From Bigelowiella natans CCMP2755 (taxonomy: Eukaryota > Protista > Cercozoa): a DNA stretch of 64,000 nt. The notes below the pieces were generated by a model. The model was not told where the DNA came from. It ran no database searches and was given only the letters and a program-made list of their open reading frames with translations. Position numbers and translations under genes: made by a program. The stretch spans positions 53,504 through 117,503 of the forward strand of contig ADNK01000342.1 of NCBI GenBank assembly GCA_000320545.1, read 5' to 3'. Positions 9,261-19,296 of this stretch are shown in pieces. The first letter of the stretch is position 1, and the number at the start of each line of letters is the position of its first letter.

Positions 9261-9904
9261 GGTTCGATAAGATTGATGCCCGCTTCCGGCGTTTTCTCGT
9301 TTTCTTCGTTTTAGAAACTTAATCGAGGATTCCCCTGTCCCCACGTTGGGGGGGAAGAGCACCAAATTGGATTTGGGTTTGAACTTGAAAACTTATGAAC
9401 TTAAAACGCTACGATCAAGTCGCTCGAGGTAAACGCAAGGGCGCTCGTACAGATGTGCTCTTTAGTGAGTCGTAGGATAAAATTGGCCATGAATATGAAC
9501 TTGAGACATGGTCAACGGTGGCGACGTGGTGGATACGGTACAGCCGTACCGGAATTTAGGAAATCTACCCCTACAGTTGAAGGCCTCTTTTGGTCATTTT
9601 CAGTTAAAAATACACGTCGCAGTAGAGATACCGTCTGCGTTGCTAGTGTTGAGCCGCACCGCGTGGAGATATTACAACTGAAGAATCAGAGGTTGGGGTT
9701 TGGGTACCAGCCTGTGATGCGGCGAAGAGAATGATGATGATGATGATGACAATGATGATGATGAAGAGTGTGAAAACTTACCAAGTGTTACATGTAAAAA
9801 TTCAGTGTAATACTTGAATGTTAGTTCACTGTTTTCATCGAATTTCCATATGGATCATCTTATGAAATGTGATTTGCCATGTGTTACTCACTCTTGCAGA
9901 AGAT

Positions 9905-12615
9905 ATGTTCGCTCGCACTTTCCGCGTCCCCGCCTCCAAAATCAAGCAGTTTGCTAAGAAGAACTCCAAGTTCCTTAGCATGGTATAAACGATGGAAGTG
10001 ATTTACACTGTCTATCATGTTTTGCAAAACAGTTCCCCAATAACTTCGCTACATTTGTTTAAAAGGGAGCTGTTGCTGGAGGCGTTGGATTAGCTGTTCT
10101 GGCTAACTGCACAGAAGTAGCTCGGGCAGACGAGAAGCCAATGTTCGTTATCAACGGTAATAAGCGTTGGTATTTCAACTTGAGCCGTTCATACGAGAAT
10201 ACACAGTGATGATAATGATGTAGATTATTCGTTTTCACATATCGGTCTAAACATATCCCAATAAATTCGTTAGGGTTCTACATGCAAATGCGCGAAGCTT
10301 ACACTGCTCCAGGAAAATCTATCCACTTTATGACTGTGGAATGGCCTGAGTCTGCCCTTGCTTGGGAAGGTGCTGCTCCCGTGGGATTATGATCCTCTGC
10401 AATGTTGTTTCAACTGAGCATACCAATGCTGACTTTCTTGCCTTACTGAGGGCGTGGTTTGGAAGGCATCGTTTTATTTTCCGTTGTCCCTAGAACTATC
10501 GTATGTATGTGCGGATTTAAAGTAATTGGTTAAACGCACATTCTCACATCTAATTCTAGATTTCCGTGGAAAGGTTCTTGGAGCAACTGATCCCAAGAAG
10601 GTGCGCACAGTTATTTTTCTGTCCTTTCAGAGGAGGATCTTTTTGACTCGCCTATCATAATTCAGGCTGCAGCTGGGTCTGTTCGTAACGATATTTTCTT
10701 GAAGTACAAGGAACTTGGCCTTAAGGTTACGACTTCGATTGTGTAATATTTTATGGTGTAAGCAGTTGTTGGTACGACTCTGACTGGTCCCTGTGTTATG
10801 TTACCGTATGATTGATGATCAGGGAGAGCCAAACACTGGTGATAACGGTAGTCTCATTCCCTTGAGAATTTTGAGGGAAGAAAAGGACAGGGAAGACCGT
10901 GGATGTCAAGGAGCGATAGATTGAAAACCTTTCGTCTATTCTTCTTTACCCCCTCTTCTAAATATGAACATTGCCACTATCATAAATGACAGCAACTAAT
11001 ACTTCTTATTTTATCACTAGGTGTCCATGCATCTGCGAGCCCTTTTGAAGCTATGGCTGAGCGATCAAACTGGTAATTTCTGCAACAACAGCATCAACAC
11101 ATACGTTCTGTCTCCAACCAACAGACATTATCAAAATAATTATCATTCATATTCACTGTGCCCTCACAATCAATGGCATCGTTGCGCATCTAGGCTCTCC
11201 GTGCCTATCGAAGATGACTACTTTGGCGCTGCTCTCCTCAAGGTAGAAGCGAATTTGAGTTAGGATCTAAATGGGAAATATATGGGAGACATAAAATGTT
11301 AGAGGCAATGAAATTATTCATATTACCACGATAAAACAAACAGTGCATGCTACTTCCATAATTTACAACTCCAACGTACTGGTGGTTAGAGCCAATGCGG
11401 TTCTTGACAAGCATTCTCAATTATCTATCTTCATTTGCGTCCCACATTTAGGCTGGAATCCCTAAGAAAACTCTCGTTGAATGGACTTACGACCCACAGG
11501 TCATCAGTGGTTTTGGGGTGGAGGGAGATTGGGATAACAAAGGAGAAATTATTTCTTGCATCGTATTGCCGTCTTGGAAATTCTGGAACTCACAAAGATG
11601 GCTACCGCAATATTATTCCCTGAAAATAGGTTTCTTTCGACGGCGGAAAGGCTTCCCTCTTCGATCTTCTTGAAGGTGTCTGTCACCCAATAGTGTAATG
11701 AGAGCATTGGGTGATGCCCTTCCGCATATCAATACACCGACGAAGAAGAAGACGCAGATTGCAGTAGCTGTAGTTAGGCTGGAGAGAGCCAGACAGCGTG
11801 TTTACTTTTGAGCGAATTTATGGAGTGTGGTGGTGTGTGTTCTCTGGTGATCTATCAATTTCATCATCCGAGAGTCGCCAATGCAGTAAAGCACAAAGCT
11901 CATCATGTGGAGATTGCTCTCATCATCAAAGTTGATTGATGATAATAATTGTGATTACTTTACAGACATGAACGCCTCTGAGTGCCTCGCTAAAGCCATC
12001 AAAATATCTGGTGCGCCCCCCCCCACCCCTTTCGAACATACGAGGGCAAGCGAGCTATCTCTAACATCTTATCGCTTCTCTTCTTCATCTTGATCTCTTG
12101 GCATCCATATTGCTACTGCTGAAGCCATGTGCTTGTTTTGCGCTAAAAACAGGCGCTAGTGCGGGCTGGGGTACCCCTAAGGTGGAAAAGAACACGGCTT
12201 ACGTCTTTGTCAAGTAATTATGTAGCTTTGTAGAGGCATGAAGTAATACGATAGTGAGCATGATGGTGATGATGATGATGATGGCCGCGATGAGGGTGGT
12301 CGCGATGAGGGTGGGAAAATAGCATAAAACACTATATGATTGCTTTCTTTCTATGTTTGAAAAAAGGCCGCATGCTGTCACCCCTGCCACTATCGCTTTG
12401 GTGAAGAACAAGTTCGCTTCCAATGGAATCGCTGTTACGTCTGAAGGCAGCCTCGACTCCAAGGAAATTGATGAGAAAAAGCTCATTGACCAGGTAATTG
12501 ATGAAAAAATATGAAATAATAGCTTAGAGGGATGATCACAAGGAAAGGGTGGTGCGAAAGATTTCCGACACAGAGTAGATTAGAGGAAGAGAGAGTCATA
12601 AAATATATATATCAA

Positions 12616-12654
<39 letters not shown>

Positions 12655-12659
12655 ATGTA

Positions 12660-12707
<48 letters not shown>

Positions 12708-13047
12708 ACTAACTCGTTTTCTTCCTCCCCCTCCTCTCTTCTTGCATTTGTTTCCTGTGGTCGTTGGTCCGCAGCACTACTATTCCATCGCTAACAAAGC
12801 CACTCTATCCAAGCCAAAGGACCTCAACCCACCGGTGCGAAAACTACCACATTTAATCAACTAATGGTACCAACTCAACTCAATGAGGTTAATCATCATC
12901 AACCAACCATAACCATGTTGTCAGGCCAAGAAAACGGCTGAATTTGCCAAAATGTTTGGCATGTCGTGGGAGAAGGTCGGTCGGTCGGTCGGTCGGTCAG
13001 TCTGTCAATAGCAGATACAATCATCAGTGAAGTTACAGAAAGAGAGA

Positions 13048-13087
<40 letters not shown>

Positions 13088-13482
13088 AGGGGAGATTTTG
13101 GATTTCAAAAAATCTTGTGGTTGTCGATCGGTGACAAACGCACACGGTCGTGACAAACACCATACAGGCTCTTGCGGATGGCCTTGTCTACAACGCTGCA
13201 GATGCATGCAAGGAGCTTGGTGTTGATGGTGGAGGTAATTGTCTTGTTGTGGTAGTAGTAGTAGTAGTTTTGTTTTGGTGGTAGAAGAAGAAGATGAAGA
13301 CGAAGACGAAGAAGAGAGTTTAACGCGGTGCATGGTGGCTATTCTGTGGTTACGGTCGGTTACGAAAGGGATGATGAGATTAGCGACGACTGTCGCTAAC
13401 GATAAGAAGAAGATAATAGACAGACTTCCTATCACCCAACAACGCGTTCACTGGAAATCGTCTATCTTGCCTCCTGCTCCCC

Positions 13483-13545
<63 letters not shown>

Positions 13546-13676
13546 TATGTGTGGGTCTTCTTCACTTAATTAATTGTTCTCTATTACATCTTTTTATCGC
13601 AGAAATGAACAAACTCTTTGGAGCGGCGAAGAAGGGAGGAAATAGCATTAAGTTTGGAGGTAGTGGTCGTAGTGGC

Positions 13677-13711
<35 letters not shown>

Positions 13712-14022
13712 TAGTAGTAGTAGTAGAATACGTACGATATATTACGTATGAGCAACCATCGCTGCCAGCCATTTACTATTCTACTACTACTACTACCACA
13801 AGTACGGTATATTGTTGACACGCTATCAATAAAGTCAACAAAAAGATTTAGGTTGCACAATAAGAGTATCAACTTTAAGCTCCAGTAGTAGTAAAGATGA
13901 AGAGTCTTTCGATGTATCCATTCAACACATTGAGGAAAAATCCATAAATTCCTGCTGGTAATTTGTTCTTTTCAGGAGGGTTCTACTGTGCTAAAATCGA
14001 TACTCCTAAGAAGGTAATCTAG
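9905..14022 (+). CDS. NDK: Nucleoside diphosphate kinase, long protist type, circularly permuted, with a mitochondrial-type leader; 18 coding exons
   Basis: GT-AG exons splice to MFARTFRVPASKIKQF...GAVAGGVGLAVLA...EKPMFVINGFYMQMR...FRGKVLGATDPKKAAAGSVR...NTGDNGVHASASPFEAMAERSNW...KNTAYVFVKPHAV...LIDQHYYSIA...KFGGGFYCAKIDTPKK. Stop at 14020-14022, or at 14115-14117 if one more intron is spliced. Confidence 0.92.
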
Positions 14023-14160
14023 TAAATGTCTCGTCAATTTTTTGCTATCCCATTCTCCTATAGGTGCATATATTCATTTCTTTCTGAACGTTTTTTTGAA
14101 CGTTTGCATGCAAGTAAATAACCTCCCTCTCATCTCCTACGCCTTATTTACTACACACTT

Positions 14161-15134
14161 CTTGTTGTGTCCAGTCTGGAGGAATTCTTGCAACAATTAA
14201 ATCTTTCTTCGGCGGCAAGTGATTTCTGTGACCGTGGCGAACAACGCGTCGAAGAATCGAATGTGGCAGCGAGCAAACAAGCACATCGTGAGTTTGTGTT
14301 GAGCCATTGCGTGCATGTGAACAGAACCAGAAACAGAGTCCGTTGAAGCAATTGTTGTTGAGCATGTGTCGCTTTTATTTTGCGAGACGGATGCAATTGA
14401 TCAATTAAACTTGTCAAATGGTCATATGGTCATCCTCATGCAGCTGTGCAATGCAGCGGCCACAACGCTAGTATTCAATCTGTTGGTCTCCGCCGTGATG
14501 TCTAGCAATGCTTTGGATTTGTGGCCAGCGCAAACCACAATCGTGTGAATTGCATGTCCCATGTCCTCGCCGCTAGCTCGCCATCGGCCTGGAATCACAT
14601 TTGCCATTCACGCACGCACGTGATGCACTCAAGCAAGTTCATGCACAAGACGTGCAACATCAATTGTTGACCGTGGCAACGCATGCGCGCACGCCGGTGC
14701 GCATGCACTGCGCTTGCGTGCTGGCGTGCATGTGACTGGTCGTGCACGCAAGTGCATTTTGCACGTTTTGATCCGCTGACCTGCTTGCTAGCTTGCCAGA
14801 CACGGGCGTCTCCGGACGTGACCACCTGTTCGTTCCCCGCAGCCATGTGGCAGCACCAAGTCAACAGCTGGCAAATGTGGCACGAGTCATTGAGCCGAAA
14901 CCAATCACCAATTGGAACCACTTGACCAAGAGCAAGTTTTCAGACAGAACACGCTCAACGAGGGGGAAGTGAAGAGGCGGTTGGAAGCCCTGATGAAAAA
15001 AGCACAAGCTCTCCTGAGGAAACCCCTCTTAGCTCTGTTCACTTTTGCGTCCGGAGACCACCAGACCTGCGTTCCAAGTGCACCAACATTTGGTCTCGTG
15101 TCCCGTGAAAGAACATGAACAATGAACAATGAAT
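14161..15134. other. TpA-depleted, TG/CA-rich intergenic block
   Basis: Manual count: ~10 TpA in ~970 bp, 4 of them in CTAG; only 2 between 14581 and 15133. Confidence 0.9.
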
Positions 15135-15158: not shown

Positions 15159-15469
15159 CCCGCCCATCACCGCATCGGCGAAAGAATTGCTCCCATTGTG
15201 CTCATCACATCAAGTGGATGGTAATTTGCTGTCGCAATGGAGAAAATGCCCTCAATTTCAAGTTCTAAATGTGGTGATATCCTTGTCGCTCGACCATCTC
15301 GGAGGGACAAATTTAAGTGTTCGAACCCTGGTCCAGCAGCAACTCCCATCAGCATTTCGACACCTATGCACAGGAGGGGGATGCATTATTAGCGACATAT
15401 AACTACGACACTGGAACACTTTTGCTAAATCGGTTCTATCAACAGAGTATAATTTCCCCAAAGTAGAAA

Positions 15470-16556
15470 ATGGCGGAAGGAGGTCGTACGCCGGTAACCA
15501 TTATCAGCGGATTTCTTGGGAGCGGTAAGACAACGCTGCTCAAGCACCTGCTTGAGAATACGGAGGATTTGAAGATCGCACTAATCGTCAATGACATGGC
15601 AGAGCTGGTAATTTGAATGACTAGTAGACAGTAGGTAGATATCATCGGCATTGCTGATCCTACCGACTCTTCACGCCGTAGAACATAGATGCGGCTCTTG
15701 TTCGAAAGAAGGGGGCAGAACTTTCGAAGATGGAAGGTACCACGCTTGCAGAATCATATCGAAAGCGTCTGTAGATGATTCAGTTTATACCCGAAAATGA
15801 GAACATGTTGAATCTGAGAATGGGGGATTGCTCATCATCATGTTACTACTCAGGCGAGGACGGGAAGATGGTGGAACTTGACAACGGGTAAATGGTGAAT
15901 AAGTAGAGAATCACACGCACATACGTAGAGAGAGATACAGAGATCCGGGCGGGGGAGGGGGTAGGGGAAGGTGCTCGGGCAGGGAGAAAGACACATGTTT
16001 TCGAGGTAATCACAGTTGATATGATCTACTATTTATAGATGTATCTGCTGCTCTCTGAAACCGAACATGGTCAAAGAAGTCTCGAGGTAGTAATGGAAAT
16101 AGTAGCAGCATCGGCAACAGAAGTTTCAGAAGCCATGATAGTTGGTGTGGGTTTGTAGCGCCATATGATAAACGTCACCCATCGTTGTGGCAGTGCCTAA
16201 TCTCTATTCTGATTATTCGTAGGCTATCCAAGGCAGCTAAATTCGACTATATCGTCATCGAATCATCCGGTCATAATTTCATCTACACCAAAGTTAGAGA
16301 AACTCGCAATTAATTCTGACACAAACAAAAACATGATTGTGGGTGTGTGCTGCACTGTTATATTTCACACTCACTACTTCGATCCCGCAAAGCTATTAAT
16401 CCCTTCGGTTATCCTGGCAGGAATCTGCGAGCCAATGCCCATAGCTCAAGTGTTCTTTGAAGATCAGGATGATACTGAAGATGAAGCGCATGAAAGAAGC
16501 AACTTCGGCACGCAAAAAGCGCTCGAGATGCTCGGAGACCTTGCTAGGTGAGCAAA

Positions 16557-16595
<39 letters not shown>

Positions 16596-17079
16596 GTGTT
16601 GATTGTGAGGTGAATAAGTGTGAATTCATTATCAATATTTGTTTTTCTCCTGTGAGCATTCTCTCCTTCCTATCCCCCTTCTTCTTCTCCTCCTCTTCTT
16701 CATCTTCATCTTCTTCTCTTCCTCTCAGGCTCGACACAATGGTAACAGTGGTAGATGCTACGAGATTCTGGGAGAATATAAACAGCCTCAAGACAATTAT
16801 GGAGCACTACGGAAAGGATAAAATATCAGATACTGAGGTAGTAGCGTTTATATGAAGATTCATTGTTGTAGCAACAAGATTGCTATGATTGAAATGCTAC
16901 CGTCGTCAAATGTGAAGAAGTAGTAGTTGTAGTAGTAGTAGCAGTATTTGTATTCAGAATCACAACTAGTAATTAGGCAATAATTTTAGTAATAACGATA
17001 ATAATAAGAAAAATAATACTTCGGAGTAGTACTGGTAGTCATCACTTGTGTTTGTTCAATTTTTCCGTCTCATTTCACA

Positions 17080-17120
<41 letters not shown>

Positions 17121-19296
17121 ATGCGCTGCTGCTCTATTTGCTTAGGAAGGGAGGCGCTCAATAGCCGAGCTGTTGGTGGACCAAGTGGAATTTGTACTAC
17201 CTTCGAGAACTCACTCAAACTATTGAAGAAGAACACGAAGAATAACGCGCTTTCTCGTTTTCGCTTGAAGAAGCAGATGCACAGTACTAATACCATCCAA
17301 ATAAAATGTAGGCAAACGTCATCCTCATCAACAAAGCTGATCTGATGGATAAGGATAAAAAGCAATTTAACCAAGTTAAAGGTGCGTTGGTTCTTTGATG
17401 CTCATCAGACAATATCAGCGCTGTATACGTGGAATGGTGGATGAAATGGATGAACTATATGTTGTTGTTTTTATGCAGATATCGTGAAAGCTCTAAATCC
17501 AGACGCTGTCTCGCTAGAAACAACATACTCAAAGGTATTATTAGCTTCTCTTCATGTTTCCTCCTCGTGTCAGTATGATGTTGCTTGTGTTAAGATCCGT
17601 ATATTATGTGTTATGTGTGTGTGTGCGTGTGTGCGCGCGCGTGCGCGCATATATGCATGGGAAGCATATTGTAGCAGTACATTGTGCGTTGTTATTACGA
17701 CGTTAAAGAACATCATCACCATTAGGTGAAACCGAGCCAGGTTTTATCTACAGGTGTGACATGACAAGGAGTGAGAATCTTGATGATAGGATGACGATGA
17801 CGATAATGATGATGATGATAATGATGATGTGCCTAAATTACAACATAATAATGACAATAACAATAGTAGTAATATATATCATTATACTGTTGTAGCAATT
17901 ACCATCAACCAGTAGCAACGATCGTAGCATTGTATTGATGGTCAACGTCTATCGTGTACTTGCTACCACCATCATCTATACAGGACTCTTTGATTTAGAA
18001 AAAGCCCGTGTGGGGTCAGGCTGGGCAAGGGTATCCTTCTTCCAACAATATGTAGATGTGTGAAAGAACAAATCAATCTCTGCGAAAGATGTGTTCTCGT
18101 ATCTATCGTCTGATGTGGCGGTGTTTGATGTATTTGATGCCGCCATATTGCGACCTAATCTTGTATTGCCATAACAACGGATCTGGCCTTAGGCCTTACA
18201 GGAAGAGGAAGAGGCTGCTGCTGATGAGAAGGAGAGCAGCAGCAGCACCAATACGACGAACATGAAGAAGAAGAAGAAGATAAAAGGTCCTTTTATTACA
18301 GAAATAGATGTTCCTTGCTACTATCGCTGCAGCAAGCGGCGGTGATTTTGGTGGTGCTGAGGAAAGAGAAGGAGAGAGGAGTGCAAGAGGAAGGAGGATA
18401 AGGAGGAGGAGGAGGAGGAGGAGGAGGAGGCAAAAAATCGTATATTTATGATTTCAACCACATGGCCAGGCATCAAGCAAGAGATATTCTGAGAATTATG
18501 TGTCATTTTCATGAAATTGATGGAATCTTGCTTCTTTTTCTTCTTCTTCTTCTTCCTTTATCCATTGACATTTATAGAGGACGATGAAGGGCCTAATAAT
18601 GCAAAGGAGAGCATCCACCACCACCATCACCATCACCATCACCGTCAGCAGCAGCAGCAGCAGCAGCAACAACAACAACAACACAACCACCATCATGGTG
18701 ACCACTATGGAATAAAGTCCTTCATTTATAGAAGAAGGTAAAGCTGTCTAGTAGAAAGGAAGACAACAACAACAATAACAACAACGATTTCATTCTTTCG
18801 ATGTATAAAAATAAGGCGGCCTTTCCACCCCCAACGACTATTTGGCCTCCTCGATGCAAAGAAGGGCATTAATGGTACTACCGCTAGTCGTACAATGATG
18901 AAAACTAATACGCTATCTACTCAAGAGTCGGAAGATGGTTTTCTTCCCCCCCCTCCACCCCATTCCTCCCCCTCTTCTCAAACGCAAACTGAATTACATG
19001 AGGGCTGTGCACTATAGCCTCAGCAGCAGCAGCAAGTTGTCGTGATCCTCATCATCGTCTATATCATCGACCAACATGTAATGATAAATACTAGGATCGC
19101 TGAGATCTAAGGGTTTTTGCTGGATGGCTTCTCGTCATTCGGTAGTAGTAGTAATAGATGTTGCAATGATATAGTATAAGGAGTAATAGCGAAAATGTAC
19201 AATTGTATGTGCAAATGAGTGCGTGTGCGTGTTTGTTAGGGGAGATCGTCGCATCGAATTGGTGATAATTGGTGTAGATATGGATCAAGAGGTTGC

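Follow-up and report, generated by a model that had tools for sequence, protein, structure and literature searches.

A Probable Circularly Permuted "Long" Nucleoside Diphosphate Kinase in Bigelowiella natans and Its Protist Relatives

The Gene and the Order of Its Modules

The window considered here is a stretch of 64,000 nucleotides from the cercozoan Bigelowiella natans CCMP2755 (contig ADNK01000342.1 of GenBank assembly GCA_000320545.1, positions 53,504 to 117,503 of the forward strand). It contains what is very probably one gene of the expressed type, split into 19 exons and with a product of 379 amino acids (aa), that belongs to a "long" family of nucleoside diphosphate kinases (NDKs) and is circularly permuted. 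The NDK motifs of the C-terminal half lie upstream of those of the N-terminal half, an order first claimed in a reading of the sequence without database searches (the sequence-only reading) and found where that reading had placed it. Coordinates are given in Table 1.

Two modules can be defined on a normal-order protein of the long family, P0048. The N module extends from AFVFVKPHA through HYY to KFGGGFYC (about 127 aa), and the C module extends from (Y/F)V(F/I)N(A/G)F through LG(A/P)TDP and DNGVHASAS to ECL (about 156 aa). Proteins with one N module followed by one C module are termed NC here, and those in the swapped order are termed CN. The window gene encodes one C module, a linker within the 14-19 aa range of the CN subfamily, and one N module, collinear with the CN proteins P0169, P0111, and P0142. 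The canonical order of the NDK half-domains is not kept. Its C module carries the motifs FVINGFYM, FRGKVLGATDP, GSVR, and DNGVHASAS, the residues of which are invariant in an alignment of 64 CN proteins (A1), while its N module carries YVFVKPHAV, HYY, and KFGGGFYC. The sequence-only reading stated that in long protist NDKs the segment ending in KFGGGFYC normally continues without a break into (Y/F)V(I/F)NGF, and normal-order relatives, P0048 among them, do show KFGGGFYC followed directly by (Y/F)V(I/F)N(G/A)F.

The extension that precedes the C module opens with basic residues and continues with a hydrophobic stretch rich in Gly and Ala (GAVAGGVGLAVLA). It could tentatively be a targeting signal or a membrane anchor. 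In the predicted model of P0169, the corresponding residues are unstructured, with a predicted local distance difference test score (pLDDT) below 50.

All 18 exons of the sequence-only reading have their AG acceptors and GT donors in place and share one frame with no internal stop. The chain end that it proposed (...TPKK) stands as far as exons 1-18 are concerned, but not in its end at 14022, since reading through TPKK-VI-stop enters an intron. The donor GT at 14014-14015 (GTAATC after the TPKK codons) closes exon 18 at 14013. The nineteenth exon adds a short tail that contributes no NDK sequence and brings the product to its full length. No second copy of any exon occurs elsewhere in the 64 kb window, which means that no outer half-domains are hidden there.

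Table 1. Coordinates of the permuted NDK gene, its modules and motifs, and its surroundings (position 1 is the first letter of the window; a slash within a motif marks an exon border)
Feature	Position	Strand	Remark
Whole coding region	9905..14222	+	19 exons, 379 codons and TGA; GT-AG borders, single frame
Exons 1-10	9905-9982, 10066-10156, 10274-10369, 10560-10600, 10666-10725, 10823-10847, 11021-11072, 11194-11242, 11452-11499, 11630-11675	+	
Exons 11-19	11966-12010, 12153-12213, 12367-12493, 12775-12834, 12925-12975, 13168-13234, 13603-13659, 13976-14013, 14175-14222	+	
N-terminal extension, ~50 aa	9905..10137	+	Spans exon 1 and the greater part of exon 2; conserved with residues 1-50 of P0169
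C module	10138..12010	+	Second NDK half and ~60 aa extension, end of exon 2 to exon 11; CN profile against canonical NDK 95-140
FRGKVLGATDPKK, C-half motif	10562-10600	+	Exon 4
AAAGSVR	10666-10686	+	Exon 5
DN/GVHASAS	10841-10847 and 11021-11040	+	Exons 6/7; catalytic His codon 11026-11028
Linker, old C-terminus to old N-terminus	12153..12196	+	GASAGWGTPKVEKNTA, 16 residues, start of exon 12
N module	12197..14013	+	First NDK half and ~85 aa insert, exons 12-18; CN profile against canonical NDK 6-43
YVFVK/PHAV	12197-12213 and 12367-12379	+	Exons 12/13; Lys codon split 12212-12213 / 12367
HYY	12775-12783	+	Exon 14
Exon 19, 15-residue C-terminal tail	14175..14222	+	SGGILATIKSFFGGK then TGA; AG 14173-14174, phase 0; matches P0169 residues 364-376; absent from the sequence-only model
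Intron microsatellite tracts	12600-12700, 13040-13075, 13480-13545, 13660-13725, 13775-13800		Introns rich in (AT)n, (CT)n, (GA)n, (GT)n, (GTA)n, and poly-C runs
(GAT)n run	9735-9765		Close upstream of the gene
Neighboring gene, downstream	15467-17395	+	CobW/HypB/UreG-type (G3E) GTPase, many exons; Pfam cobW E 1.2e-14 (P-loop exon)

A Transcript-Derived Relative and Paralogues in the Same Genome

The locus was searched exon by exon, and the CN protein P0169 (377 aa) represented it in the fold prediction, the profiles, and the trees. P0169 first turned up in a word search with another CN protein, P0053. It is encoded on an intron-less contig of 1300 nucleotides (L016) from a related organism, in JGI sample 3300017173, and the lack of introns indicates that it derives from a transcript. 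Its open reading frame is complete, with an in-frame stop 5' of the ATG. The 19 exon peptides of the window gene are collinear and abutting on residues 1-376 of P0169, with 274 of 371 residues identical (74%). The gaps in this alignment are single residues that fall exactly at split codons, and both the exon 1 extension and the exon 19 tail are included. With tblastn, CN proteins are collinear across the window exons, while the NC protein P0048 maps to them in swapped order.

The genome contains a paralogue, found by the family profile, which is also of the CN type and has far fewer introns than the window gene (C335:1686-3365, equivalent to L017:1686-3365). One of its exons, L017:2456-2971, carries in one open stretch the linker together with the C-module end before it and the N-module start after it. 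As this junction lies inside one exon, the swapped junction is independent of any splice prediction. A short intron with a microsatellite follows this exon. A third and divergent member (about 30% identity) is apparently split across a contig gap, with the start of a C module at the end of C2174 (C2174:31105-31212, L019) and an N module at the start of C2173 (C2173:11-675, L018), which suggests that it too is in CN order. All of the long-NDK members found in the Bigelowiella natans genome (the window gene and those at C335 and C2174/C2173) are thus of the CN type. A search of the genome with single exons returned only the locus itself and one weak match, a false negative according to the later family profile.

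Ordinary NDK genes are also present in this genome, at C1928, C1676, C2761, C2415, and C1151. The canonical NDK at C1928:31469-31873 is intron-less and scores 193 bits, and C2415 is an NME7-like gene with DM10 and NDK domains.

Relation to the Canonical NDK Domain

The sequence-only reading predicted that the protein would give two partial NDK matches in swapped order, and hhalign finds them. When the A1 profile is aligned to the genome's canonical NDK (L001), CN residues 93-149 correspond to NDK residues 95-140 (E 1e-4), and CN residues 218-255 correspond to NDK residues 6-43 (E 7e-3). A profile of NC proteins (A2) gives the same two pieces against L001 in canonical order. NDK chains in the Protein Data Bank (4dut and 1xqi) also match in the swapped pattern, in agreement with hhalign and Pfam, although these matches (whole-chain E 0.039, with both stretches flagged "?", and E 0.04-1 overall) are too weak to support the order alone.

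Predicted structures extend this comparison to the level of the fold. AlphaFold2 models the NC protein P0048 with a pLDDT of 85.2, and Foldseek gives 114 matches to this model at E <= 0.001. Those listed are all NDKs, with a probability of 1.0 and template-modeling (TM) scores of 0.57-0.76 normalized by target. The model of the CN protein P0169 has a pLDDT of 85.4 and a predicted TM score of 0.78. By DSSP assignment, the two models share 25 secondary-structure elements in rotated order. The first block, from strand E52-55 to helix H199-210 in the CN model, equals E181-185 to H330-343 in the NC model, and the second block, from E222-229 to E353-358, equals E42-48 to E167-172. On the strength of this rotation, the CN form may be equivalent to NDK in three dimensions.

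In the C module the predicted order is alpha2 and beta3, then the Kpn-loop region, then beta4 bearing the catalytic His, and finally the family-specific extension of about 60 aa. The N module would then supply beta1, which contains the KP motif, followed by alpha1 and beta2, the helix with HYY, and the family-specific insert of about 85 aa that ends in KFGGGFYC. The cut, between beta2 with the insert and alpha2/beta3, falls at the midpoint of the beta-alpha-beta-beta-alpha-beta core, which is pseudo-twofold symmetric. The new chain termini would lie between the insert and alpha2, at the midpoint of the ferredoxin-like core, and with termini in this position the two halves can pack as in an ordinary NDK.

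Layouts, Taxa, and Origin of the Permutation

The long-NDK family is populated well beyond this genome. Exon 13 (42 aa), searched against 1.84 billion representatives, retrieved 65 proteins, and word searches with P0053 (swapped order) and P0048 (normal order) gave more than 2000 matches each, all eukaryotic. Among 303 fetched proteins, the layouts are NC in 120, CN in 72, NCNC in 27, CNCN in 10, and CNC in 10, the remainder being several longer arrays (up to 7 units) and fragments; these counts are drawn from two ranked searches and do not constitute an unbiased census. The NC members include the diatoms Skeletonema, Discostella, Fistulifera, Leptocylindrus, and Gedaniella. The CN members include the haptophyte Prymnesium parvum and the euglenids Eutreptiella, Peranema, Neometanema, Rhabdomonas, and Anisonema, in addition to Bigelowiella natans. 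Tandem arrays are found in the kinetoplastid Bodo saltans, the diplonemid Lacrimia, and the dinoflagellates Tripos and Prorocentrum. Protists had been named as the place to look for the same permutation and for tandem intermediates, and CN, NCNC, and CNCN proteins are all present among them. The swapped layout is therefore ancient and family-wide, being the common state in haptophytes, euglenids, and the other paralogues of this genome.

Some of the fetched proteins are unusual in their own right. P0001 of Bodo saltans (CUF98075.1, 2366 aa) and P0002 (2306 aa) contain 7 NC units each, and the UniRef name of the Bodo protein is EF-hand domain-containing. P0004 (3705 aa) contains 18 matched stretches of the module pair. 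P0035 (372 aa, normal order) has a low-complexity stretch in its N module and a garbled C-terminus, and looks like a gene model with a retained intron.

FastTree trees of the separate modules (152 rows for C modules and 160 for N modules, both short and unrooted) place the NC singles in one clade each time (98 and 99), such that NC versus CN needs only one change. The CN singles are nested among the modules of tandem arrays in both trees, adjoining a group that is mostly CNCN. The joints between modules match as well. The C-to-N linker has a median of 16 aa (range 14-19) in 72 CN singles versus 15.5 aa in tandem arrays, and the N-to-C joint measures 8 aa in NC singles versus 7 aa in tandem arrays. 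The existing NCNC and CNCN proteins, the nested position of the CN singles, and the matching linkers support the route proposed from the sequence of the locus, namely a tandem duplication after which the outer halves were lost. By this route, tandem NCNC arrays that shed their outer half-domains would have given rise to the CN form on one or a few occasions, long before Bigelowiella natans.

This direction of change, from NC through tandem arrays to CN, rests on the canonical order being ancestral, as the trees are unrooted. They would also accommodate the reverse history, in which the swapped order is ancestral for the long family and the normal-order proteins of diatoms are derived permutants. 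The tight clade of NC singles, mostly diatoms, fits such a history, as does the spread of CN and tandem forms across several supergroups. Nevertheless, it is unlikely: canonical NDKs have the N-C order in all domains of life, which makes NC the most economical starting point, and both orders are available within tandem NCNC arrays.

Catalytic Residues and Function

The NDK active-site residues are invariant in the 64 CN proteins of A1. In P0169 numbering they are K230, Y274, F58, R91, T98, R109, N130, H133, S135, and E144. The window gene encodes all of them; those other than the Phe lie in exons 4, 5, 6/7, 12/13, and 14, and align to the genome's canonical NDK. By motif, they are Lys in KPH, Tyr in HYY, Phe in NGF, Arg and Thr in FRGxxLGATDP, Arg in GS(V/L)R, Asn, His, and Ser in DNGVHASAS, and the Glu that follows. 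Such an invariant active site makes nucleoside diphosphate (NDP) kinase activity, with a ping-pong phospho-His mechanism, the most likely function. The protein would fold into an NDK-like domain in which the gamma-phosphate of a nucleoside triphosphate is passed to an NDP by way of phospho-histidine. The sequence-only reading took the gene to look functional from its in-phase splicing, and it probably is functional.

An NDK-like module that has lost catalysis or taken on another role, such as a nucleotide sensor or a structural protein, is unlikely. In favor of this reading, the family has diverged far from canonical NDK, with Pfam scores below the cut-off, and it carries the insert of about 85 aa and the extension of about 60 aa. 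Modules in Bodo saltans sit in a 2366-aa protein named for an EF-hand, and group II NME proteins often lack activity. The full active site, invariant in the CN proteins and present in the window gene, is hard to explain without catalysis, and argues for an active NDP kinase instead.

Weighing the Permuted Gene Model

Several observations, the unrooted trees among them, weigh against a permuted NDK at this locus. Support for the gene model is comparative. The locus is unmatched by Pfam NDK (PF00334), both on single exons and in a six-frame search of the genome that finds five or six other NDK genes. P0169 scores 24.6 bits with this profile, below its gathering threshold of 27 bits, and only its C half is matched (residues 93-149 on profile positions 85-130). 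The P0169 model has no significant match in Foldseek, and no NDK among its matches, and VIA-align finds only generic ferredoxin-like folds (Z <= 5.5) over residues 70-267.

Other CN singles give similar sub-threshold scores, again in the C half only (24.5 bits for P0111 and 25.3 bits for P0053), while tandem relatives pass the Pfam threshold (59.1 bits for P0009, with its best stretch on profile positions 2-49, and 42 bits for P0006). The lack of an NDK match for the P0169 model is the behavior expected of an order-dependent aligner on a permutant. The sequential alignment to generic ferredoxin-like folds may in turn arise because the core is pseudo-twofold symmetric. Engineered circular permutants of ribosomal protein S6 were also matched by the P0169 model (Z 5.3), but this is a generic fold match and is not taken as evidence.

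A gene-model artefact, in which neighboring genes or fragments, or the middle of a longer NCNC gene, have been wrongly joined, is highly improbable: although the linking intron (12011-12152) was placed from the sequence alone and NCNC proteins exist in other organisms, the intron-less contig of P0169 spans both halves in CN order in a complete open reading frame, the junction of the C335 paralogue lies within one exon, and the 64 kb window has no further N or C module exons, its downstream neighbor being an unrelated CobW-type GTPase. Tandem genes or a misassembly at the locus were also considered, and were rejected on the lack of second exon copies in the window, the collinearity with P0169, and the single-exon junction at C335.

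Literature and Significance

NDKs are among the best-studied small enzymes, and their fold, their assembly into hexamers or tetramers, and their folding pathway are textbook material. Full-text literature searches found no paper on a permuted NDK or on the long-NDK family. The databases hold hundreds of long-NDK proteins, automatically named "nucleoside-diphosphate kinase" or "hypothetical protein," with the permutation unnoted. The sub-threshold Pfam scores and the failure of sequential structure searches mean that CN proteins are easily left unannotated, or labeled without mention of the rearrangement. The sequence-only reading had allowed that the permuted order might prove to be the common and already described state of its subfamily. 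The order is common, but no description of it was found in the literature. The swapped subfamily is real, widespread, and apparently unremarked, and the window gene is an ordinary member of it, such that the interest lies in the subfamily and not in the locus.

On balance, the subfamily seems to represent a natural, undescribed lineage of circularly permuted NDKs, with the stages of permutation by duplication (NC, NCNC, CNCN, and CN) all alive in protists. Its termini would lie next to the nucleotide-binding helix hairpin, and the permutant may therefore depart from classical NDK in how it forms oligomers, how it is regulated, or how it attaches to membranes. If this is true, a permutant with a whole active site would be a clean natural case of the duplication-then-truncation route, and would offer a ready system for how chain connectivity affects NDK folding, oligomerization, and regulation.

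Comparison with Known Systems

Canonical NDKs (PF00334; Ndk and NME1-4) are homologous to the window protein in both halves. The full catalytic set is kept, and a ferredoxin-like core is predicted. The window protein differs from them in the swapped order of its halves, in the insert after the HYY helix (about 85 aa), in the extension after the last NDK helix (about 60 aa), and in its N-terminal extension of about 50 aa.

The group II NME proteins NME7 and NME8 have repeated NDK domains in one chain, as the tandem arrays of the long family do. However, their domains are in canonical order and have neither the insert nor the extension of the long family, and they are not close relatives. The long trypanosomatid proteins NDPK2 and NDPK3 were considered as family members and rejected, since they are DM10 fusions.

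The normal-order long NDKs of diatoms (the P0048 cluster, which includes Gedaniella sp.; Leptocylindrus danicus A0A7S2P314; and those of Fistulifera, Skeletonema, and Discostella) have the same two modules, with both insert and extension, at about 35-85% identity to the individual window exons. Their modules are in N-C order with a joint of about 8 aa, and their chain ends at the site of the window protein's internal linker.

In the tandem arrays (Bodo saltans A0A0S4IQT6 with 7 units; NCNC proteins of Lacrimia lanifica, Tripos fusus, and Prorocentrum cordatum; and CNCN proteins of Eutreptiella), the C-linker-N arrangement occurs internally and with the same linker length. The arrays range from two to seven or more units in a chain, whereas the window gene has exactly one C and one N module.

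The closest correspondence is with the CN singles (P0169; Prymnesium parvum KAL1528534.1, equivalent to A0AB34K7T1; Eutreptiella gymnastica A0A7S4G7Y2; and those of Peranema, Neometanema, Rhabdomonas, and Anisonema). These proteins have the same permuted layout and are collinear with the window protein over their full length, differing only in lineage-specific N-terminal extensions and tails.

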